Part shown: one piece after another, positions 9,600-63,296 of the stretch | How positions within the stretch are numbered: position 1 is the first letter of the stretch | How the letters are laid out: every line of letters starts with the position of its first letter | Notes under the pieces: generated by a model | What the model was told of the DNA's origin: nothing | The model's database searches: none | The model's input: only the letters and a program-made list of their open reading frames with translations | Sequence record: AP017925.1 | DNA length: 64,000 nt | Direction: 5' to 3' (one strand) | Position numbers and translations under genes: made by a program

Positions 9600-12092
9600 A
9601 TGAAAATCCTCGAACTCGAACTCGATCTCTACAAGAGGTTGACGAAGGTGGCGCACATCCGTCACTTCAAGCTGACATTGAAAGAAATCGTGCAGTTGAT
9701 CTTGGGGACAAATGGTTCGGGCAAAAGCTCTATTCTCTACGAACTGTCGCCTCTCCCAGCTAACCACAAGGCTTACCATAAAGGTGGTAAGAAGCGTGTC
9801 CTGATTGCTCATCAGAACAAGATGTACGAACTCATCTCTGATTTTGCAAACGGGCAAGACCACTACTTTTATGTTGATGGTGAAAACCTGAACACAGGTC
9901 GCACCGTCACCATTCAAAAGGAACTGGTCAAAGAGCACTTCGGTATCACGTTTGAGACTCATGAGCTGCTGCTGGGTTACGAGCAGTTCTCCAAGATGTC
10001 TCCGGCACGTCGTCGTGAACTCTTTACGATGCTGTGTGTGGTGGATTACACCTATGCCATCAAGCTGTACCAGAAAATCCAAGTTGCGATGCGCGACGAT
10101 GTCGGTACGCTGAAGAACCTCAAGAAGCGCCTGGTCACGGAAACAGCGAATGCGCTGAAAGACGAAGAGATCACTGGTCTGCGTGTGCGCCTAGCTGAGC
10201 TGAATCGCGAATCGCAAGCAATGTACATGCTGCGTAACGCTAATGCTCAGACCACCTTCGATGCGCGCACGGTAGCTGAAGCCGCCAAGAAGACTATCGA
10301 TGACCTGTTGCAGAAGTTTCGCTCGGTGCGCTCGATTCTGCGCGATAAGTGTTGGATCACGCCAGACGAATATCAGGAAGACATCGACAGTCTGCGCGCT
10401 GAACTGCATGGTATCGAAGGTGTCTATGCTCGTGCGTCGGAAGAGTTCATCAAGGCTTCTTCCGAGGTTGAGCAGGTTTCTGGGCTCGAAGCAGAAGATG
10501 TCACCAAGCTGCAAGACGAAATCATCGCTTCGAACAAAAAAGCACAGAGCTTGCTGGAGACGCGTAAACGGCCTCTGGAGGGCTTTAAGCCTTTGGCAGC
10601 CTCGCAGTCTATGGAACTGGTCTACGAGTCGTTATACAGCGTTCTAACCGAGCTGCCGGCCGATCCTGAGGGACAAATGTCGTCCCAAGCATTGAGCGAG
10701 GTGTCAGAGCGCTTGCGCTTGGTCGAAATGTCGATCAGTGCCAACCGCGAGAAGCTGTCTGGTCTCGAACATCGGGAAAAACATCTGGTCGATCTGGCGA
10801 GTTCGGAGGACATCAATTGTCCAAAGTGCGAACACTCATTCAAGATGGGTTACTCGGTTGGGGAGCACGAATCGATCAAGACGCGTATCGCGGCAGGGCG
10901 CAATCACATCGAAGCACTAGGCAAAGAAGCTGCTGCTTTGAAGGAACAGCAAGAGCGGCTTAGCAACTACGCCAGTCTTTATAAGGAATACGTGCGCATC
11001 ACTCGTAACTCGCCAGAACTGCAACCGTTGTGGGATCTGATCGTCGAGGAAGACGCTCTGCGTCGTTCGCCTCAGCATGCTCTGACGCTGATCGAACTGG
11101 TACGCAGCGATCTGCGTATCGAGATGCAGGTAAATGCGATCTATGAAAAGATTGCGACCGACGATCACCGACTGAAACTCGCACAGTACGCTCAGTCCGA
11201 AGCCATCAAGACCAAGAAGCAACGTTTGGAACAGTTGGAACAGGAAATCGGTCGTCTGTCGAAGCAGAAGGTCTGGGTACAGGGTCGTCTAAGCGATCTG
11301 GTTCGCACTCAGCAGCAGATCAAGCACATGTACGAGGTCGGCGACCGGATGGCAAAGGCCAAGGAAGAGTTCACCAAAGCTTCCTACGCAATTATCGATG
11401 CTGTCAAGAATGAGATCATCGATGAAGCGCTAGCTGAGACTCATCGCGAGATTGCTACGCTGTCGACGCGTATCCACTCGATCGACCAACACGAGACACT
11501 GATCAATGATCTGAAACAGCAGATCCAAAATCACGAGAAATCAGAAAAGGCTTACAAGGCCTTGGCTGACGCTCTGTCTCCGACTGATGGTCTGATCGCT
11601 GAAGGGATGCTGGGCTTCATTCGCAACTACGTGGCGCGGATGAACGCACTAATCGCTAAGGTGTGGACGTACAAAATGGAAGTGCATGACTGCTCGACCG
11701 AGGACGATTCCGCGGAACTGAACTACAAGTTCCCAGTGACAATCGGTAACGATCCAGAACCAGTGCCTGATGTTGCTGATAGCTCATCTGGTCAAGAGGA
11801 AATGCTGAACCTAGCATTCCGCGTCGTGGCCGCGCAGTGTCTCGGTCTGGATAAAGGTCCGCTGCCATTGGATGAGTTTGGTAAGACCTTCGATGAAAGC
11901 CATCGCGAAGCTGCGACCAACGTCGTGCGTCAGCTGATTGAACAACTGAGCTTCTCGCAGTTGTTTATGATCTCGCACTACGAATCGAGCTACGGAGCAT
12001 TCTACAATGCTCAGATGTCAGTCATCGATAAGCGCAATATCACTGTACCAGTTAACCGCCGGTATAACGAGTTCACTGAACTAGCAGCATAA
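9600..12092 (+). CDS. sbcC: SbcC/Rad50-like SMC ATPase
   Basis: Walker A GTNGSGKS, zinc hook CPKC, signature SSGQ, LDEFGKTFD, ISH loop, long coiled coils. Confidence 0.92.
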   Translation: MKILELELDLYKRLTKVAHIRHFKLTLKEIVQLILGTNGSGKSSILYELSPLPANHKAYHKGGKKRVLIAHQNKMYELISDFANGQDHYFYVDGENLNTGRTVTIQKELVKEHFGITFETHELLLGYEQFSKMSPARRRELFTMLCVVDYTYAIKLYQKIQVAMRDDVGTLKNLKKRLVTETANALKDEEITGLRVRLAELNRESQAMYMLRNANAQTTFDARTVAEAAKKTIDDLLQKFRSVRSILRDKCWITPDEYQEDIDSLRAELHGIEGVYARASEEFIKASSEVEQVSGLEAEDVTKLQDEIIASNKKAQSLLETRKRPLEGFKPLAASQSMELVYESLYSVLTELPADPEGQMSSQALSEVSERLRLVEMSISANREKLSGLEHREKHLVDLASSEDINCPKCEHSFKMGYSVGEHESIKTRIAAGRNHIEALGKEAAALKEQQERLSNYASLYKEYVRITRNSPELQPLWDLIVEEDALRRSPQHALTLIELVRSDLRIEMQVNAIYEKIATDDHRLKLAQYAQSEAIKTKKQRLEQLEQEIGRLSKQKVWVQGRLSDLVRTQQQIKHMYEVGDRMAKAKEEFTKASYAIIDAVKNEIIDEALAETHREIATLSTRIHSIDQHETLINDLKQQIQNHEKSEKAYKALADALSPTDGLIAEGMLGFIRNYVARMNALIAKVWTYKMEVHDCSTEDDSAELNYKFPVTIGNDPEPVPDVADSSSGQEEMLNLAFRVVAAQCLGLDKGPLPLDEFGKTFDESHREAATNVVRQLIEQLSFSQLFMISHYESSYGAFYNAQMSVIDKRNITVPVNRRYNEFTELAA

Positions 12093-12128
12093 AAGGCCAG
12101 GAGGGGAAACCCTCCTGGCTCTTATGCC
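12087..12128. terminator. Hairpin terminator, identical 33-bp copy 2 (12096-12128)
   Basis: Same GCCAGGAGGGGAAACCCTCCTGGCTCTTATGCC as 8506-8538, preceded by GCATAA. Confidence 0.85.
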
Positions 12129-12133
12129 GTTAT

Positions 12134-13965: not shown

Positions 13966-14161
13966 GAGAAAACTCCGTAAGAGTGCGTTTTTCCGCTTTT
14001 TATGCGGTTTAAAATGGCTCAAATAATGTGATCTACTATTAGGCTAAGTAGTATTTTTATACGACCAATGCCCTCCGTTCCCACGGCGGAAGGAGGCGGT
14101 GGTCCGCGTGGACGTCTTGGCCGACAAGTATTCCGAGACATCATCAAAGGACGATTGTTCA

Positions 14162-34250: not shown

Positions 34251-34471
34251 GTGCGGTCGCCCTTCTTCTAGGATCGATCTTCCTGTTCCTAGGTATCCGT
34301 ATTTCCATGGATGCGAAGGTACTCCACATGTTGGGGTTCCGGCGTGAAGGGAAATGGATGGCCCATGCAGCTTTGGCAATGGCTGTGTTGGGATTCGTGT
34401 TTTGGAATGCTGGATCGCCCAAACCGAGTATCGTCACTGCTTCTGCGTCTGAAACCTATTTGCTTAGGTGA
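34247..34471 (+). CDS. Small membrane protein
   Basis: Two hydrophobic segments; ATGA overlap with the portal-like gene. Confidence 0.55.
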   Translation: MSAVALLLGSIFLFLGIRISMDAKVLHMLGFRREGKWMAHAALAMAVLGFVFWNAGSPKPSIVTASASETYLLR

Positions 34472-34492
34472 AGGCAAAAAAAAAAAGATGAC

Positions 34493-34540
34493 GACATAAG
34501 AGCGAGAGGACCCATCAGGGTCCTCTCGCTTTTTATGCCG
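34493..34540. terminator. Bidirectional terminator with GACATAA/TTATGCCG flanks
   Basis: AGCGAGAGGACCC-ATCA-GGGTCCTCTCGCT stem. Confidence 0.85.
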
Positions 34541-34691
34541 CCACTCAAAGATTGGCTTTTCCCCTAAAGGGATTGGGTGGAAGAGTACAACTGGATGGTG
34601 GTGGAACTCCTAATGGGTTAGGGCTAGCGTAAATCCATCCGGAACTAAGGCAGGCTCCTACACCCGTCATCCTACCTTAGTTCTCTTTTAT

Positions 34692-36812
34692 TTACGCAGC
34701 TTTCGCTTCCTTGGACAGGAGGAAGCAGTCTTTGTTCAGCATGCCTTGGTGCAGGCGATAGCGAACGTTGTCCTTGGTGATGAGGAATTGCTCCGAGTTG
34801 GGTTGATTGCCGATGGCTTTCTCGAACGTGCTGCGAGCGATCTGATGCAGAGCACCCAGCGAGTCAGCCTGGATCACGGCAGCGCCTTTGGTCGGTACGC
34901 CGATGGCTAGTTCATTGTCCGTGTAGTTCACCCACACGGCGCAGATGTTGCGCTGCAAGAACAGCACGCGAGCGAGCACTGCATCGCTCAGTTCTTCGTT
35001 GCCCTCCGAGATCAGCACGGCTTGTGCATGATGCACGGCAGTCGGGTCGGTAGCCGGCACGACATGCACGTTGTTTTGCAGGATTGCAGTTTGCGTTGCA
35101 CGCAGCTTTTCGGCAAACAGGGCGCCGTAGTGCTGTTCGACCGCAGCCACGATTGCCGGACCGTCTTCGGAGAAGTCCGAGATACGGATGCCGACACCCA
35201 TTTCGCAGTCAGTTGCACGGTTGACGGCCTGGGTGAGCAGGTCATTCACCAGCTTGCGTGCCAGCGGATCGCGGATCTTGCCGATGTAGCTGGCTGCTTC
35301 CGCGAAGTCCTTGCTGCTGGAGATTGCCTTGATCACGATAGCATCTTCGGCAGCATCGTCAGCCGATGCGTAGACCACTGCCGAATTCACTTGCGAGCGA
35401 CGAGCGTAGGCATCCGGCACCGATTCGCTCATCTCGGCCGTGAGGCGAGTCGTGCGGATCGAGCTGTCCACGTCTTCTTCAGCGCAGAACTTGTCTGCGA
35501 TGATGACGTTGACGGTCACTTTGTCTGCCGGCGCATACAGCACCTTGGCCTTTTCACTTACCGGGCGTTGCGGTACAGCCGGGTCCGGTTGGCCCTTGGT
35601 CGGGTCGATCGCGTGTGCTTCATAATTCATGGCAATTTCCTTTTGCTCCTGGGTCAGTTCTTGCAGAACAGCAATGATCAGACTGTCCTGCTTGGTTTCA
35701 AAATAACGCACGGTGTGGGTACGTTTGCACCATGCCGGATGGAAGCGCTGCAGGCGACTCGGCTTCCATGCTTCCGCACCGTCTTTGCGCTCACGGATAA
35801 CATCCACCACTTCATCGCCCATCTGGACGCTGAACAACGGCTTCTGCTCGACCGGAGCCGGCGCTTCAGTAACGGTGGTTTCCAGCGGCTTGCTGAAATC
35901 CGTTACGTCGCTGTCGAACTTCGCTGCGGCGCTACGTGCAGCTTCGTCCACCGGCGGCTGGCTAGCCGTCGGGTTCGGACGGCGCATACGTGCTTGGTAA
36001 CTCGACATCGCATGAGTCGGTTCACCCTCCGTATTCACCAGACCGCTTTCTTTCAATGCATCTTGCATTGCTCCTTCCACCTTGCCGAAAATCTTCTCGG
36101 CTCGGCGACCGTAACGACCATGGCGCTGGCCAGCGTCGTTGTTGTAACGACTCTGAGTCACGCCGTATTCGCTACCAGTGCTTTCCACAAACGCACCAGC
36201 ACCCTGACCGCGCAGCGCGCGAGCATCGCGCAGAGCTTCCTGCGTCGAGCCACTCACCGTACCGAAACCACCGCCGCCACTGCCAGTACCCATCTGGCTG
36301 AACGGCACGTACGCGACTTGGTTCTGAGCCAGCGCGATCAGGTAGTTCCAGATCTCAGCGTTCTCACGAACAGCCGCTTGTTCTTGCGGCGGCAGCGAAG
36401 CCATGAACTGCGGATCTTCAGCGGCCATGGCCGAACCGCAGCACTTCACAGCACGAGCGATCGTGGTGTTGGCTGCAATGTCCAGGTTGCGCCATTCACC
36501 GGCTTGGACACCATAACCCATACGCATGATGATGGTGTAGACCAGGTCTTCGAAGCTCTTGTTGTTGAACGCGTTGTCCGAGATCACCTCGAACATGCCG
36601 ACGCGCAGCGGGTGACCGCGCAGCGCTTGCTGCTGGATCTCGTTGATGGTCATCAGTGCGATCTGCGGCGTAGCCTGGTCGTACGGTTGCCCGATCTGGA
36701 AGTTCCAGTTCTGGAACTGGACGCCGATCTGGTTGACGTCGTAGATTTCAACTTGGGGAGCCTGTTGCTGTTGACCGCGGGTGAACATCCCGGTTTGGTG
36801 CGAATGTTGCAT
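34692..36812 (-). CDS. Conserved jumbo-phage protein (706 aa)
   Basis: Long ORF with strong codon bias downstream of the nvRNAP subunit; no catalytic motif recognised. Confidence 0.7.
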   Translation of the reverse strand: MQHSHQTGMFTRGQQQQAPQVEIYDVNQIGVQFQNWNFQIGQPYDQATPQIALMTINEIQQQALRGHPLRVGMFEVISDNAFNNKSFEDLVYTIIMRMGYGVQAGEWRNLDIAANTTIARAVKCCGSAMAAEDPQFMASLPPQEQAAVRENAEIWNYLIALAQNQVAYVPFSQMGTGSGGGGFGTVSGSTQEALRDARALRGQGAGAFVESTGSEYGVTQSRYNNDAGQRHGRYGRRAEKIFGKVEGAMQDALKESGLVNTEGEPTHAMSSYQARMRRPNPTASQPPVDEAARSAAAKFDSDVTDFSKPLETTVTEAPAPVEQKPLFSVQMGDEVVDVIRERKDGAEAWKPSRLQRFHPAWCKRTHTVRYFETKQDSLIIAVLQELTQEQKEIAMNYEAHAIDPTKGQPDPAVPQRPVSEKAKVLYAPADKVTVNVIIADKFCAEEDVDSSIRTTRLTAEMSESVPDAYARRSQVNSAVVYASADDAAEDAIVIKAISSSKDFAEAASYIGKIRDPLARKLVNDLLTQAVNRATDCEMGVGIRISDFSEDGPAIVAAVEQHYGALFAEKLRATQTAILQNNVHVVPATDPTAVHHAQAVLISEGNEELSDAVLARVLFLQRNICAVWVNYTDNELAIGVPTKGAAVIQADSLGALHQIARSTFEKAIGNQPNSEQFLITKDNVRYRLHQGMLNKDCFLLSKEAKAA

Positions 36813-39846: not shown

Positions 39847-39877
39847 TTGGCAGCCTTTGATAGCTGTCACTCACATT

Positions 39878-39887
39878 GGTAATATGT
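39878..39887 (-). promoter_or_regulatory. Early-type promoter motif ACATATTACC
   Basis: Exact 10-mer also at 47135, 58319 and 63287, always intergenic upstream of minus-strand genes; contains the phiKZ early consensus TATTAC. Confidence 0.7.
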
Positions 39888-42829: not shown

Positions 42830-42929
42830 ATTAATGGTGTCTTTTTTACCGGATTAAATCCGCAAAATAAAAGGGAGTCGTCACAGCGAACGTACCGCGA
42901 CGACTCGACGGTAGTGTTTTAGGCTGCTC

Positions 42930-42940
42930 AAATAATTACC
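42930..42940 (+). promoter_or_regulatory. Middle-type promoter-like motif AAATAATTACC upstream of DnaB
   Basis: Resembles the phiKZ middle consensus AAAATTACC; lies in the divergent intergenic region. Confidence 0.4.
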
Positions 42941-43053: not shown

Positions 43054-44589
43054 ATGAAAGATATTCTGCTCCTCATTCGTGCGATCACCTTGTTGTTCCG
43101 CGAAAGTCAGCTGGACATCGGTGCGACCAGCTCGCCCGAGATTGTTAAAGAAGTAGCGGAGACCGTCAAGCCGCCTGAGATGGCTGTCGGGTCTAGCGAT
43201 AATGATCGTGACATGGTCATGGGACTCCGTTCCATTGCCGTTGGCATGGCCACCAACCCGGAAGGCACAAAATACGTTGCAGACGACCTCCTGCAACGCG
43301 TACGTCTGCTGACTCGCCATGACGAGTCGCTGTACGACTCGCTGAAGGAAGGCATCGTCGGCGAGATGTCGGAAGAGTCGCTGAAACTCATCACTGGCAA
43401 TATCCGTCAAGAACTCAATGTGTATCTGCGCGAGGTACAGGCTCTCAACATCATTAAAGAGAACTCGCGCAAAGCTTCGTTCGATCGCGACAGCATTGGT
43501 AACCTGCCAGAATTCATCGCAAACTTCCGTGCAGCGCTGGAACAGTACGAAACGAACGTCAAAGAGAAAGATCCTGCCATCGTTGGTGAAGTCAAGGTCA
43601 GTGACGGTGACCGTGTTGAAGCCGTGTTCCAGCAAGCCAAAGAGCTGAACAACGAAGACGGCATTATGAAAACCGGTTGGCAAGCGCTCAACCGTATGTT
43701 GCAAGGTGGTTTCCGGCGTGGCGAAGAGTGTGTGATCGGTGCACTCCAGCACAACTTCAAGACAGGCTTCACGCTGTCTCTCTTCAAACAGATCGCTCTG
43801 TACAACGTACCGTACATGATCGATAAGAAGAAGAAGCCATTGCTGTTGCGCATTACCTTCGAAGATCCGCTGAGCCTGAACTTCCCGTTCCTCTTCCGCA
43901 ACATTAAAGAGAACGAGACTGGTGAACACGCCAATGTGGTAAATACACCAGTGGAAGAGATGGCAGCTTTCGTACAAGAGAAGCTGACCGTCAACGGCTA
44001 CGAGATCATGATGGTGCACGTGAACCCGTCGATGTGGGGTTACCGTGATATCCAGAACTATGTTCTGTCCCTAGAAGCCGAAGGTTACGAGATTCACATG
44101 CTGATGCTGGACTACCTGAACATGGTAGACAAGCGTGGTCTCGATAATACTGGTCCGACTGGTTCGAACATCCGTGATCTCTTCCGTCGTATGCGGAACT
44201 TCTGTGCGCCGCGCAAGATCACTCTGATCACGCCGCACCAGCTGTCGACCGAAGCGAAGATGTTGATTCGCCAAGGCAACGAAGAGTCGTTCGTGAAGGA
44301 CATTGCGAACAAGGGCTACTACGACAGTTGCCGCACACTGGATCAAGAGGTAGATCTTGAGATCTATATTCACATTGTGAAAGCGGACGGCAAATCGTGG
44401 CTCACGATACAACGCGGAAAACACAGGCTAATTCAACAGACTAAAGAGGAATACAAGTTCTGTGTCTTGCCTTTCGAGGACATCGGGGATATCAGAGACG
44501 ACGTGAATGGTAAGGACACGTCGAGGAAGAAACCCGCTGGCCCAATGGATGGTGAAAAGCCTGGCTTCTGGGACTTTGATCCGCTGTAA
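43054..44589 (+). CDS. dnaB: DnaB-like replicative helicase
   Basis: TGWQALN.ML.GG; variant Walker A GALQHNFKT; LDYL; HQLS; RGKHR finger. Confidence 0.9.
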   Translation: MKDILLLIRAITLLFRESQLDIGATSSPEIVKEVAETVKPPEMAVGSSDNDRDMVMGLRSIAVGMATNPEGTKYVADDLLQRVRLLTRHDESLYDSLKEGIVGEMSEESLKLITGNIRQELNVYLREVQALNIIKENSRKASFDRDSIGNLPEFIANFRAALEQYETNVKEKDPAIVGEVKVSDGDRVEAVFQQAKELNNEDGIMKTGWQALNRMLQGGFRRGEECVIGALQHNFKTGFTLSLFKQIALYNVPYMIDKKKKPLLLRITFEDPLSLNFPFLFRNIKENETGEHANVVNTPVEEMAAFVQEKLTVNGYEIMMVHVNPSMWGYRDIQNYVLSLEAEGYEIHMLMLDYLNMVDKRGLDNTGPTGSNIRDLFRRMRNFCAPRKITLITPHQLSTEAKMLIRQGNEESFVKDIANKGYYDSCRTLDQEVDLEIYIHIVKADGKSWLTIQRGKHRLIQQTKEEYKFCVLPFEDIGDIRDDVNGKDTSRKKPAGPMDGEKPGFWDFDPL

Positions 44590-44608
44590 GAGGCAAAAAA
44601 AAAATAGT

Positions 44609-44648
44609 GGCATAAAGAGCGAGGGCCGTAAGGCCCTCGCTTATGCTG
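44609..44648. terminator. Bidirectional terminator
   Basis: GGCATAAAG..GCGAGGGCC-GTAA-GGCCCTCGC-TTATGC. Confidence 0.85.
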
Positions 44649-44649
44649 C

Positions 44650-45441
44650 TTATTTAGCAGCGATATCTTTGAAAGACTCGCCTCGAAAGACTCTCAGATA
44701 AGTTCTACCTTTATCTAAGCCGAGCAAGCCGCACCACCACTCCAACGGATGAGTCTGCTCGTCTTCCTTCAATCCAGACGTAGAGAAAGTTATTTCTCTT
44801 TCAGCCATAGCTTTAGAAACAACCTTCTCGAAAGACCAACCGAGCTTATGAATACGTTGCCAGATAGTGCTATGCGATAAGCCAAGCGCCCGACACCAAT
44901 CGGGTAGTGTCATTTTCCAGCCATGAAATTCGTAGTAGATGCTGCTACGTCTATTATTGGCTTGTTCGGTGCGAGTTGCCCACTTGCAATTGGATTTACG
45001 GTACGGGCCATTATTGTCTTCTCGCTCGATGGAATACTCGGACGAAGGGCGCGGACCCATATCGTGCAAGAAAGTTTCGAAGCTTTCCTTCCATTCATCC
45101 GACATCGTGATTCCGCGAGCCCCGTAGTCTTTATAAGACGGCGACTTTGGATCGTAGCAGCGAAGCTTGATAGTGTTCCATACCTTGTATTCTGGATACG
45201 CACAGTAGCCGTGTTTGGTGTTGGTATCTTTCGTTACTTCAATTGCGAGACAACCACAGCTATTTGTGTAACCAGCGTTCAAATGAGAAGTTTGCGGTTT
45301 GATGGTATTTCCGCATCCTCCTAGTTCTGGATCACACAGGCATTCCCAGAGGATCTTTCCATGCTCATTCCTTTCAGGAAGTTTACGGAGGACTCTGAGC
45401 CTCCCAAAGGTTTTGTTGCTGAGATCGATGGCTGCTGGCAT
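44650..45441 (-). mobile_element. Free-standing HNH-type homing endonuclease gene
   Basis: DLSNKTFGRL.V, W.C.CD..CG, SCGC, Y.VW..IK.RC, YGARGI, SIER.DNNGPY..SNCKWAT..EQANNRR; more AT-rich than its neighbours. Confidence 0.85.
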
Positions 45442-45532
45442 GATAAGTTCGCATAAGCTGGCGGAGGTAACTCCGAAACGATAGATTAAGCATGAGAGTA
45501 AATACTCTCTAGAAAAAATAAGTGCAGTAGCA

Positions 45533-45576
45533 GCATAAGCGAGAGAGGCCGGGTGGCCTCTCTCGCTTTTATGTCG
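45533..45576. terminator. Hairpin terminator
   Basis: GCATAAGCGAGAGAGGCC-GGGT-GGCCTCTCTCGCTTTTATGTCG. Confidence 0.8.
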
Positions 45577-47098: not shown

Positions 47099-47134
47099 GA
47101 GTGTCTTTCAGATCCTAGTGGTTTAACACAAGTT

Positions 47135-47144
47135 GGTAATATGT
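47135..47144 (-). promoter_or_regulatory. Early-type promoter motif ACATATTACC
   Basis: Exact repeat of the motif at 39878, upstream of the NTase gene. Confidence 0.7.
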
Positions 47145-49955: not shown

Positions 49956-50882
49956 TTATTGCTCGGCCGCCGCCAGCGCCTTATTCAGCGCAAGGTAGGC
50001 GTTGATTTCTGCACGAGCGACCTCTACTGCGGCAGAGAGGATCTGCCGCTGGATCTGGGACATCGATTCCCACGGAATAACAAACCGCAGTTGCTGGTGT
50101 TGGCTTGCCGCTGCATTGTAGGCCTCACGATTTGCCTGCACGGAGTCGTAATACATCCGGTAGACTTGCTCGGCAGAGATGTCGGGCTGATGAACCACGA
50201 GATGCATCGCCGCACGCGAGATGTCGTTATACGGAAGTGGCTTGAAGATTTCACCGTTAGAGCCAAAGTTGCTCAGGAAAGTCGACAACGACTTAACTAC
50301 CAATTCGGTTTGGTCAACTGTGATCAGTCTCGCCACACCTTCCACCACCTTCGGGATACAGAACTCGACATAAGCACTGTCATTCTGGTCGTACAGCGCC
50401 ACACGAATCACCACGTCCCAGTTCGGCTGATCAGGCACACGACGCAGCGTAAAAGAGCTAAGCACCTCCAGCTGCGGTGCCTGTGGATTGAGTTCTGCAT
50501 AATAACCAACGAAACGCCGCACCGATTCGGAGAAGGCGCGGACATTGACTGCATGCGGTGCCAGCTTGTCCTGCATGATGAGGCCGTGCTTGGCCAGTTC
50601 GCGTTTGATGAAACTCTCAACACGAGTCAGCGGGTCCGTAAGCACGTTATAAAGAACGGTGCTAGGTTCTTCCAGAAGGTGGAGTTTTGCCCACTGGTTG
50701 CGATCAACCGTGTTGAGGGTGGCACGCAGCATGCCGCGCAATTTGGAATAGTGGCCGATCTTCTTAGCACCATCGAAGATCGATGCCAGAGTTTCGACCT
50801 CAACCGGCTTACCGAGTTGCAGGTCGCGTTCCAGGAAATCGCGCAGAGTGACAGCGCATACGGCAGGGGTATCCATTTGCAT
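49956..50882 (-). CDS. Hypothetical protein (308 aa)
   Basis: RBS AAAGGA; no family recognised. Confidence 0.65.
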   Translation of the reverse strand: MQMDTPAVCAVTLRDFLERDLQLGKPVEVETLASIFDGAKKIGHYSKLRGMLRATLNTVDRNQWAKLHLLEEPSTVLYNVLTDPLTRVESFIKRELAKHGLIMQDKLAPHAVNVRAFSESVRRFVGYYAELNPQAPQLEVLSSFTLRRVPDQPNWDVVIRVALYDQNDSAYVEFCIPKVVEGVARLITVDQTELVVKSLSTFLSNFGSNGEIFKPLPYNDISRAAMHLVVHQPDISAEQVYRMYYDSVQANREAYNAAASQHQQLRFVIPWESMSQIQRQILSAAVEVARAEINAYLALNKALAAAEQ

Positions 50883-50972
50883 CCTTTGGTTGTTATTCAG
50901 GCGGTGATTACTTTCCTATCAACACTATCTAGGTGTGGATACAAAAATAATCAGCGGCATAAGAGGCACATT

Positions 50973-51541
50973 GCCCCAGCTCAAGCCATCTGGCCGCACC
51001 CCTACGCTCAGTAAGGGATTTAGGTTGATGGTCGTGGCTGGGGCGTATGCTTTTCATTGAGTGGCGCCAATCGTTCAACAAAGTGATAGCTAAGGGAAGT
51101 CTTGGAGAGCATCAGTCTACCAAGAGCGACACGAAACTAGCATCGGTGTCTATTACGTTATTGCCGAGTCCCACACAGGAACTATTACTCGAAGGGGAGT
51201 GTATCTGGAGCGAGAATCTCACTCAGTTAGGGCATGGTCATTTACCCTCAGATATACGCGAGCGCATCGCTGACGTACGCAAGTATGTCTGCAATCAACG
51301 AGGCGCCGCTGGGACCGTGAGCGACTGCATGTAAGTCTGAGTGAGATATGCTAGCGTACCTACTTCTCACTGTGCCGAACAGCCCTCTCGCTGGCGCAGT
51401 CACCTGCCAGCGTCGATATCGCACGCGGCTGCTCAGGCCGCGGTTGAAGAGGGCTTTGCATCCAGGACACAGGGTACGAGCCAGCCCGAAATACGGAGCT
51501 GGCCAATGAGAAGTAGGAGTTACGCCAGAAGCCCCAGCTCA
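50973..51541 (-). ncRNA. Candidate large structured non-coding RNA (~570 nt)
   Basis: No credible ORF; perfect 11-bp pairs 51359-69/51507-17 and 51216-26/51337-47; 8-bp pair 51381-88/51448-55; several local hairpins; a loop-to-distal pairing; 11-nt terminal direct repeat. Strand inferred from the flanking genes and a downstream TTATGCCG motif. Confidence 0.6.
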
Positions 51542-51634
51542 GATAGCTGAAGAATCCGAAGATGTTTGTTCTCCTTGTTCTTTGTTGAGTGTTGTGCACT
51601 CGTGGTCAAATAATTAGCCACCCCATGTAATTTC

Positions 51635-51886
51635 TTACAGGGATGCTGTTTTACAGAGATATTCATCAAGCGCTTGTGCAGTGCGATCGATTCTCCATTG
51701 ATTCAGTAACACGTTTGCCGAGGCAATTGCAACGGCGGGAGGATCTGGTTCTTCAGTGATCACTCCTGCCGCTAGCTCAGCATCATGTTTAGCCTTAGCA
51801 CGATGATACGCGAGATGCTTATCAAACGTAGCGCGAGCTGTCAACTTCGACGGTGTAGCTGATGCTACGCGCCAGTTGGTCGGCAT
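51635..51886 (-). CDS. Hypothetical protein (83 aa), start uncertain
   Basis: Overlaps the upstream gene by 65 bp. Confidence 0.35.
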   Translation of the reverse strand: MPTNWRVASATPSKLTARATFDKHLAYHRAKAKHDAELAAGVITEEPDPPAVAIASANVLLNQWRIDRTAQALDEYLCKTASL

Positions 51887-52250
51887 GGTCGAAAATCTCC
51901 AGCGTGTAGCGCCAGTTCTTATCGCTCTTCGAGCGGGTCAGCTTGGCGGTTTCCAGACCTTGCTTGAACGCTTGTTTGAAAGCGACAGCATAGTCGATGT
52001 AGTAAGCCAGGTCGCGCTCTTGCTTCCACGACAGACCGATGCTGCTGCGCAGGAAGCCCTGCACGCGGCGCAGTTCCTTGTCCAGAGCAGCGATGTGGAC
52101 GGTCAGGTTCGTATAATACTCAACGCTCTTGACTTCGAAGATTTCTTCCTTCACCGGTGCAACCACTTTCGGTGCCGGAGCTTCTTCAGCCATGTTGAAG
52201 AAAGCCAGGATAGCGTGGGAGATACGGTCGATTTTGTTCAGTGCATTCAT
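51822..52250 (-). CDS. Hypothetical protein (142 aa)
   Basis: RBS TGGAG; leader TGGAGTCTATCATG identical to that of the 54767 gene. Confidence 0.65.
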   Translation of the reverse strand: MNALNKIDRISHAILAFFNMAEEAPAPKVVAPVKEEIFEVKSVEYYTNLTVHIAALDKELRRVQGFLRSSIGLSWKQERDLAYYIDYAVAFKQAFKQGLETAKLTRSKSDKNWRYTLEIFDHADQLARSISYTVEVDSSRYV

Positions 52251-58272: not shown

Positions 58273-58318
58273 GATTAGGTCCTCGTCTATGTTAAGGTAC
58301 TACTGTCTTTACTCCAAT

Positions 58319-58328
58319 GGTAATATGT
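58319..58328 (-). promoter_or_regulatory. Early-type promoter motif ACATATTACC
   Basis: Exact repeat; upstream of the NTase pair. Confidence 0.7.
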
Positions 58329-59580: not shown

Positions 59581-59682
59581 AGCGAAACTCCTAAAGAGGG
59601 TACAGCAGTTGAGTGGATAAAACTTCGGCATAAGCCCAGAGGCCGTAGCCTCTGGGTCATTATAGAGCAAATGACTTGCGAG

Positions 59683-63248: not shown

Positions 63249-63286
63249 GATGTTTCCTTTAAGCAGTTCAGTGGTGTTTACAGCGT

Positions 63287-63296
63287 GGTAATATGT
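63287..63296 (-). promoter_or_regulatory. Early-type promoter motif ACATATTACC
   Basis: Exact repeat, intergenic. Confidence 0.7.

Follow-up and report, generated by a model that had tools for sequence, protein, structure and literature searches.

Only a handful of RNA classes longer than 500 nucleotides (nt) are, to our knowledge, known in bacteria and phages, and each is either biochemically remarkable or still mysterious. Those called ROOL, GOLLD, OLE and raiA are multi-domain RNAs of 500-800 nt in which numerous covarying helices occur together with GNRA loops and unpaired stretches that do not vary; their genes stand alone, no cognate protein being encoded next to them, and phages or prophages are frequent carriers of ROOL and GOLLD. 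phiKZ-related jumbo phages use polymerases of their own for transcription, and the family is under development for the biocontrol of bacterial wilt. Here, we describe an element in one of them, Ralstonia phage RP12 (AP017924.1; 279,845 bp), that shares all of these features and is very likely a gene for a conserved structured RNA, located on the minus strand of a gap between protein-coding genes. The stretch analysed, hereafter the window, comprises 64,000 nt from sequence record AP017925.1; its position 50883 corresponds to position 116136 of the RP12 record, and the RP31 sequence over the region is 100% identical to that of RP12. The reading that we favour – a separate structured RNA gene of ~650 nt on the minus strand that acts through a core, domain 3, and has a ribosome-engaging segment at its 5′ end – is given an overall probability of about 0.6.

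An initial annotation, made from the sequence alone, had placed a candidate structured RNA of ~570 nt at 50973-51541, within a gap containing no credible gene. The gap is confirmed. The RP12 annotation is empty from 50883 to 51821 and, because an unannotated minus-strand open reading frame (ORF) of 83 amino acids (aa) occupies 51635-51886, the true gap is 50883-51634 (~750 bases), bounded by the end of ORF106 and by the 83-aa ORF. The element predicted within it is longer than was drawn, from ~51607 to ~50955.

Searches by tblastn with ORF106 and ORF107 led to Ralstonia phages FLC1-1B and FLC4-3B (33% and 46% amino-acid identity), which carry the same syntenic and alignable gap, and an IMG/VR scan with the longest invariant block found a further relative, IMGVR_UViG_3300049460_000312 (locus L007; hereafter the IMG/VR contig). 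The comparison thus covers three independent lineages: RP12/RP31, FLC1-1B/FLC4-3B (FLC), and the single IMG/VR contig. Between RP12 and FLC the gap has 58% nucleotide identity and a longest identical run of 25 nt, compared with 50-59% identity and identical runs of 8-17 nt for the four flanking genes; the gap DNA is as strongly conserved as the neighbouring protein genes. The alignment is a mosaic in which invariant blocks – including GAUUGCAGACAUACUUGCGUACGUC, CUUACAUGCnGUCGCUCACG, CACUCAA..GCAUACGCCC, and UGAGCUGGG – stand between diverged stretches with insertions/deletions (indels) that are not multiples of three. Throughout domains 3-5 the lineages have no reading frame in common and the indels are likewise not multiples of three, and the longest ORFs of RP12 and FLC run through the 25-nt block in frames that differ.

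The gene context differs among the lineages. In the IMG/VR contig the element has other neighbours on either side, yet the entire element and a hairpin just upstream of it (H1) are still conserved, and because of this the element is predicted to be an autonomous unit. These observations bear directly on a role in cis, either as a riboswitch-like leader of ORF106 or as the 3′ untranslated region (UTR) of the small gene upstream. Such a role would account for the position of the element directly between two genes of the same strand, and long structured leaders are known in phages, but it is improbable: a leader is expected at a constant position upstream of one gene, whereas in the IMG/VR contig unrelated genes lie between the element and each of its two RP12 neighbours and the spacer between element and ORF106 is not conserved there, a terminator-like hairpin precedes the element, a terminator motif with a TATG follows it, and no riboswitch family matches.

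The family appears to be small. Searches of 50,697 phage records with blastn and tblastn matched only RP12/RP31 and FLC1-1B/FLC4-3B, and further IMG/VR pattern scans yielded, beyond locus L007, just one chance match (L051). The 43 loci from a metagenome scan were chance matches as judged by blastn and sequence context and had no covariance-model match; none of the 19 loci from a scan of GTDB genomes matched the domain 3 covariance model, and the same model applied to ~500 kb of compared sequence returned known members only. Protein-anchored scans with ORF106 and ORF107 recovered RP12 itself alone, and the next relative, Burkholderia phage FLC9 (DnaB helicase 49% identical in amino acids), lacks the element in the 30 kb of syntenic sequence that lies downstream from its DnaB gene. 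A plasmid collection, possibly including some replicons of the host genus, has no similarity to the element and therefore no antisense target for it, and the literature on RP12/RP31, the FLC phages, and phage structured RNAs does not mention it.

The same holds for described RNA families. Rfam 15 at gathering thresholds gives no match anywhere in the window (ROOL, GOLLD, OLE, HEARO, raiA, RNase P, transfer-messenger RNA (tmRNA), introns, riboswitches and self-cleaving ribozymes included), its E-value mode (E<=10) gives just two noise matches over 50700-51900 (E=2 and E=6.5), and ARAGORN finds no transfer RNA (tRNA) or tmRNA gene in the window. The core proposal of the initial annotation, of an undescribed large structured RNA that is not ROOL, GOLLD, RNase P, tmRNA, or a group I/II intron, agrees with these results and with the structure described below, which is conserved with covariation across the three lineages.

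A consensus fold computed with RNAalifold on the minus-strand alignment has 171 pairs, 45 of them with both sides changed and pairing kept. An independent count finds 92.8% of alignment cells paired against 84.7% in shuffles, and the 45 compensatory pairs compare with 15.3 ± 3.2 in shuffles (reached in 0 of 500), the structure having been derived from the same three-lineage alignment as the covariation count. Sliding the partners by 1-3 columns leaves 1-8 compensatory pairs, and the consensus-energy z-score, with columns shuffled within conservation and gap classes, is -7.2 for the minus strand and -4.8 for the plus strand. The element is thus predicted to form a five-domain secondary structure maintained by many compensatory substitutions, and so has, from these three lineages and the structure-defining alignment, the covariation-conserved structure that is the general mark of a structured non-coding RNA.

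All of the sequences and pairings quoted in the initial annotation are present, as is an 11-nt direct repeat, GCCCCAGCTCA, that it had noted at 50973-83 and 51531-41. How far they exceed chance was judged with 1000 shuffles of 50973-51541: the two perfect 11-nt inverted repeats were reached in none, complementary pairs of at least 8 nt number five against 1.9 expected (P=0.04), and the direct repeat has P=0.03 but is specific to RP12. Both long helices are kept in the other lineages with compensatory changes, those of 51216-26/51337-47 affecting seven of ten pairs; the other is 51359-69/51507-17. Of the local hairpins, CGCGGC, CGCTGG and CCAGC-CCG are similarly kept with compensatory changes, but GACAC, in the variable interior of domain 4, is not. 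These two helices, the three kept hairpins and the terminal hairpin with 50973-80/51037-44 rank among the best supported of the consensus fold. A pseudoknot involving the GACAC loop finds no corroboration, since 7-nt complements are at chance level (11 observed against 7.3 ± 2.8) and the partners are deleted or changed in other lineages; no conserved pseudoknot gained support from a column scan.

The duplicated 11-mer had also suggested an RNA of two states, or one processed or circularised at the repeats, that switches the pairings of GCCCCAGCTCA with GCTGGGGC. Either copy in RP12 can pair with the partner, but only the 72-nt terminal hairpin formed by the 3′ copy has been kept: in FLC and the IMG/VR contig this copy is GAGGGUGGGC, changed in step with its partner GCCCRCCC, whereas the 5′ copy stays UGAGCUGGG and has lost complementarity, so that the proposed enclosing stem of ~500 nt is impossible there. 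The duplication being confined to RP12, and no self-cleaving ribozyme or intron family matching, we regard such a switch as very improbable.

The domains and the other features are listed in Table 1. The H1 stem, CUGUAA/UUACAG, is invariant in all lineages, although the IMG/VR contig has a different gene upstream. The invariant 20-25-nt stretches of domain 3 are largely unpaired in folds of the individual lineages. The closing stems of domain 4 covary (CGGC/GCCA to UGAC/GUCA, and others). An invariant junction, CACUCAA..GCAUACGCCC, precedes domain 5, in which the RP12 pairing GCCCCAGC/GCUGGGGC covaries to GCCCRCCC/GGGUGGGC in the other lineages.

Table 1. Predicted features of the RNA element and neighbouring reading frames, in window coordinates.
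Feature	Position	Strand	Remarks
Hairpin H1 (CCCUGUAA-GAAA-UUACAUGG)	51623..51642	minus	Helix 1; terminator-like, upstream of the RNA
Promoter-like AT-rich 11-mer ATTATTTGACC	51604..51614	minus	Likely transcription start near 51607
Shine-Dalgarno-like AAGGAGAA	51569..51576	minus	In an A/C-rich leader; invariant in all lineages
AUC-initiated frame	51360..51563	minus	67 codons + UAG; overlaps domains 1-2
Domain 1	51526..51558	minus	Helix 3; hairpin with invariant UGAGCUGGG, the 5′ copy of the 11-mer
Domain 2	51353..51524	minus	Helices 4-11; multibranch, closed by 51359-69/51507-17
Domain 2 covarying hairpin	51499-51478	minus	
Domain 2 covarying hairpin	51449-51417	minus	CGCGGC hairpin; invariant UGAGCA loop
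Domain 2 covarying hairpin	51411-51390	minus	CGCTGG hairpin; GNRA tetraloop (GUGA or GCGA)
Domain 3 (core)	51216..51347	minus	Helices 12-18; closed by 11-bp helix 51347-37/51226-16, 7/10 pairs compensatory
Domain 3 invariant block CUUACAUGCnGUCGCUCACG	51335-51316	minus	
Domain 3 invariant block GAUUGCAGACAUACUUGCGUACGUC	51296-51272	minus	
Domain 3 hairpin	51248-51229	minus	Conserved loop AAnUGACnA
Domain 4	51062..51186	minus	Helices 19-26; variable; includes the RP12-only GACAC hairpin
Domain 5	50966..51050	minus	Helix 27; 85-nt 3′-terminal hairpin, including pairing 50973-80/51037-44
CUCUUAUGCCG tail	50955..50965	minus	Copy of the genome's hairpin-plus-YTTATGCYG motif, directly after the 3′-terminal hairpin
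ORF106	49956-50882	minus	RP12 annotation
ORF107	51822-52250	minus	RP12 annotation
83-aa ORF	51635-51886	minus	Unannotated; weakly conserved in FLC1-1B as gp101
RP31 ORF103	51047-51334	plus	95 aa; annotated in RP31, not in RP12

The minus strand is favoured by several kinds of evidence: fold energy, wobble pairs, natural substitutions, and the motifs at the two ends. The consensus energy of the alignment is -139.5 kcal/mol for the minus strand and -125.4 kcal/mol for the plus strand, with covariation terms of 9.2 and 2.9, and among helices predicted on both strands there are 15 minus-only G.U pairs and eight plus-only ones. FLC1-1B and FLC4-3B differ at seven positions in the element, three of them within helices, and all three of these single-nucleotide differences exchange G.U for G-C or A-U on the minus strand, where the plus strand would have A.C mismatches.

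This asymmetry of wobble pairs points to constraint at the level of RNA, and also bears on a role in replication, either as an origin with a priming transcript, in the manner of ColE1 RNA II or the R-loops of T4 oriF/oriG, or as a DNA site such as pac. ColE1 provides a precedent for a structured primer RNA of ~550 nt, the element lies ~6 kb from a gene for a DnaB-like helicase, and the genome also encodes RNase H and UvsX. However, GC skew does not change at the site, there are no iterons or direct-repeat arrays, and the wobble asymmetry speaks for RNA rather than DNA, although a primer of the RNA II type would share such constraint; altogether, we consider a replication element quite improbable.

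Jumbo-phage promoters are short AT-rich motifs (PMC7598289), and a promoter-like AT-rich 11-mer, ATTATTTGACC, stands at the likely 5′ end of the RNA; FLC has TTTTATAGAACC and the IMG/VR contig TTTTATGAACC at the same position. The window contains three exact copies of ATTATTTGASC, all three on the minus strand, intergenic, and upstream of genes. The two other exact copies of ATTATTTGAGC lie at 14017-14027 (-), upstream of ORF071 (virion structural protein), and at 42926-42936 (-), upstream of ORF095, which adjoins the major head protein gene; should ATTATTTGAGC mark a class of promoters, expression of the RNA may coincide with that of structural genes.

The 3′ end of the RNA likely lies at CUCUUAUGCCG, at whose position FLC and the IMG/VR contig have U-rich tails. 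The motif of which it is a copy, YTTATGCYG, is present at 16 sites in the window where 1.5 would be expected (e.g. 12085-12129, 34532-34540, 45531-45539, 50955-50963, 59626-59634), almost all of them at gene ends, immediately 3′ of a hairpin rich in GC. The motif also stands behind practically every evident terminator hairpin of the genome. It is often half of a longer palindrome, CRGCATAARAG-hairpin-CTYTTATGCYG, and looks like the bidirectional terminator signature of the genome. YTTATGCYG contains TATG, which defines the late promoters of phiKZ (PMC7598289), and CUCUUAUGCCG may also serve as a TATG-type promoter for ORF106. Taken together, the two ends suggest an autonomous minus-strand transcription unit of ~650 nt, from ~51607 to ~50955.

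The initial annotation had also noted an AAGGAG in the A/C-rich leader and called it an orphan, which it is not. The Shine-Dalgarno-like AAGGAGAA that contains it resembles the ribosome-binding sites of neighbouring genes, and is followed in all lineages, 7-8 nt downstream, by AUC and a frame that stays open to a UAG for 67 (RP12), 69 (FLC), or 70 (IMG/VR contig) codons. The UAG sits in the conserved 3′ arm of the helix that closes domain 2. A conserved anti-Shine-Dalgarno partner was considered and rejected, the predicted partner differing in each lineage.

The main product could then be this protein of 67-70 aa, with the remainder of the transcript a long structured 3′ UTR or stabiliser. Besides the invariant Shine-Dalgarno and the constant AUC spacing, the frame has no stops in the three lineages where the other two frames have 1-10, and the indels within it between FLC and the IMG/VR contig are of 6 and 3 nt. 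For the same pair, the ratio of nonsynonymous to synonymous changes (pN/pS) is 0.51 in frame and ~1.3 out of frame, and in the N-terminal 20 codons 0.15-0.21 against 0.8-2.1, with synonymous changes inside YLSWGFWR; over all comparisons it is 0.51-0.79, and 0.15-0.46 for the N-terminal 20 codons, which is below the out-of-frame values in most but comparable with non-coding windows; the coding signal is thus a weak one.

Against this, no canonical start codon (AUG, GUG or UUG) stands at the proper spacing, AUC occupying the position in all lineages and the nearest shared canonical codon being absent in RP12. AUC is a very poor initiator in bacteria. Substitutions by codon position (17/17/25) have no clear third-position bias, the RP12 and FLC peptides cannot be aligned over their middle part, an alignment of the peptides as query finds no protein homologue, and Pfam and PHROGs give no domain match. 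Parts of the element that are clearly non-coding likewise have open frames of ~70 codons, and similarly low pN/pS values; helix covariation also explains several of the 'synonymous' changes, their codons lying in covarying helices, and the nucleotides with the strongest conservation are outside the frame. A protein as the main product is accordingly unlikely, and for translation of the frame at all the chances seem roughly one in three. The AUC frame is a candidate for a mini-protein or a ribosome-loading segment, and with its Shine-Dalgarno it may make the RNA bifunctional.

The preferred reading, of a structured RNA gene, can be put as follows. A phage RNA polymerase would start at the AT-rich promoter-like motif, and transcription would stop after the 3′-terminal hairpin at the usual terminator motif of the genome. 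The domain 3 core would be the working part, its invariant 20-25-nt stretches binding a protein or nucleic-acid partner in trans, and domains 1, 2, 4 and 5 would be a scaffold. The 5′ third, with its ribosome-binding site, AUC, and frame of 67-70 codons, probably engages ribosomes, either as part of a bifunctional RNA like RNAIII or in producing a mini-protein at low level. Action in trans through domain 3 is a tentative guess by analogy, somewhat short of even odds. That the element represents a new class of ornate RNA of nucleus-forming-type (phiKZ-related) jumbo phages, combining ribosome loading onto a frame that has no start codon with a catalytic, higher-order-assembly, or host-factor-sequestering role of domain 3 late in infection, is a more speculative extension that we think unlikely.

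Several points weigh against the preferred reading. Protein could be the main product, given that the ribosome-binding site, the AUC and the open frame are conserved. The independent lineages number only three, and one alignment served for both structure and covariation. RP12 and FLC differ in the interior of domain 4, which is not conserved, and neither are some helices; one proposed in the initial annotation, 51381-88/51448-55, for example, is not kept as drawn in other lineages. A generic sigma-70 promoter and terminator scan, uninformative for this phage, found nothing at the element – the 3′ hairpin was missed because its loop and stem exceed the limits of the scan – and the transcript ends are placed by motifs.

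Folding energy is also less striking than it first appears. The single-sequence fold has z-scores of -4.0 (plus) and -4.85 (minus) against dinucleotide shuffles, but lies only -1.7 (plus) and -2.2 (minus) standard deviations from GC-matched 570-nt tiles of the window, and is by itself suggestive, not decisive. A distance of only ~2 standard deviations from genome background would suit a pseudogene in decay, or spacer DNA that is structured by chance, as would the 95-aa plus-strand ORF that RP31 annotates here. That ORF, however, is conserved in neither FLC nor the IMG/VR contig, and matches no family, and invariant runs of up to 25 nt and 45 compensatory pairs where ~15 are expected leave a non-functional origin extremely improbable.

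The element is located in a long minus-strand series of genes encoding small hypothetical proteins. Pfam and PHROGs searches with the ORFs of the gap and seven neighbouring proteins returned only phage-specific families of unknown function. RP31 ORF103 was rejected as a gene on the grounds of conservation and family matches given above, and is probably a spurious call antisense to the RNA. The 83-aa ORF overlaps the end of ORF107 by 65 nt and has FLC1-1B gp101 as its positional counterpart; the two share LLNQWR (BLASTP E=7e-6 across 23 residues), and it is probably a real small gene absent from the RP12, RP31, and FLC4-3B annotations. Coordinates transferred from AP017924.1 shift by one base either side of two intervals, ~44590-44650 and one between ~61900 and ~63250, the DnaB gene, for example, being at window 43054-44589 and not 43055-44590; this suggests single-base indels between the window and the GenBank record, and an A-run is present in one of the two intervals.

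Elsewhere in the window, CATATTACCA has four exact intergenic copies (39877-39886, 47134-47143, 58318-58327, 63286-63295), all on the minus strand and upstream of minus-strand genes, and six copies with <=1 mismatch against 1.9 expected; it resembles the AT-rich early consensus of phiKZ-like phages and is a candidate for an early promoter. The 218-bp intergenic region between the convergent ORF090 and ORF091 (34460-34700, plus) folds at -98.4 kcal/mol (z = -6.7) with a typical terminator palindrome and additional long helices, and the 570-nt tile from 34201 that overlaps it is the strongest folding outlier of the window. FLC9 (LC667451.1, ~127.6-128.1 kb; L074 25640-26140, minus) has a non-coding stretch of ~480 nt directly downstream of an array of eight tRNA genes that ends in a CTCTTATGCC terminator and has a fold z of -4.4; no similarity between it and the RP12 RNA is detectable, and it may be a further structured RNA that has escaped annotation.

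A new class of this kind, if true, would show that phiKZ-related jumbo phages invest in large RNAs as well as proteins. The element offers a compact test system, with a conserved core to mutate, and its conserved Shine-Dalgarno, AUC, and frame offer a way to ask whether phages use non-AUG initiation or ribosome loading on structured RNA. The analysis also corrects the annotation, with RP31 ORF103 probably spurious and one small gene missing, and yields motifs that are candidates for the promoters and terminators of this group of phages.

Among known systems, group I/II introns and RNase P RNA are of similar size and have GNRA tetraloops, and the bulged hairpin of domain 3 superficially resembles domain V of group II introns. 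The element has no flanking exons, however, its domain 3 hairpin has neither the catalytic AGC triad nor a GNRA loop, and it has none of the RNase P conserved regions nor a covariance-model match at E<=10. The pRNA of phi29 and RNA II of ColE1 are likewise structured non-coding RNAs encoded by a phage or replicon and act in genome handling, RNA II being of similar size, but they are not homologous to the element, at which there is no evidence of a motor or an origin. Like tmRNA, the element is a structured RNA containing an internal frame with no start codon and a conserved stop, but a tRNA-like domain is absent, neither ARAGORN nor Rfam gives a match, and its frame of 67-70 codons lies behind a Shine-Dalgarno.

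The resemblance to ROOL, GOLLD, OLE, and raiA has its limits: the element matches none of their covariance models and, unlike them, belongs to a Gram-negative jumbo phage and a small clade only, has no adjoining tRNA genes, and carries a conserved ribosome-binding site and open frame. In this last respect it is more like RNAIII of Staphylococcus aureus (514 nt, encoding delta-haemolysin), SgrS/SgrT, and SR1, long structured RNAs with a short translated frame towards the 5′ end and other domains that act as RNA, although it has no sequence or structural relationship to them and its putative translation would begin at AUC. Most likely, on the three lineages available, the element is a new family of the large orphan non-coding RNA kind, and the most economical reading, of a stand-alone RNA acting through domain 3 and engaging ribosomes at its 5′ segment, would place it among the orphan 'ornate' RNAs, possibly with a bifunctional twist like that of RNAIII.

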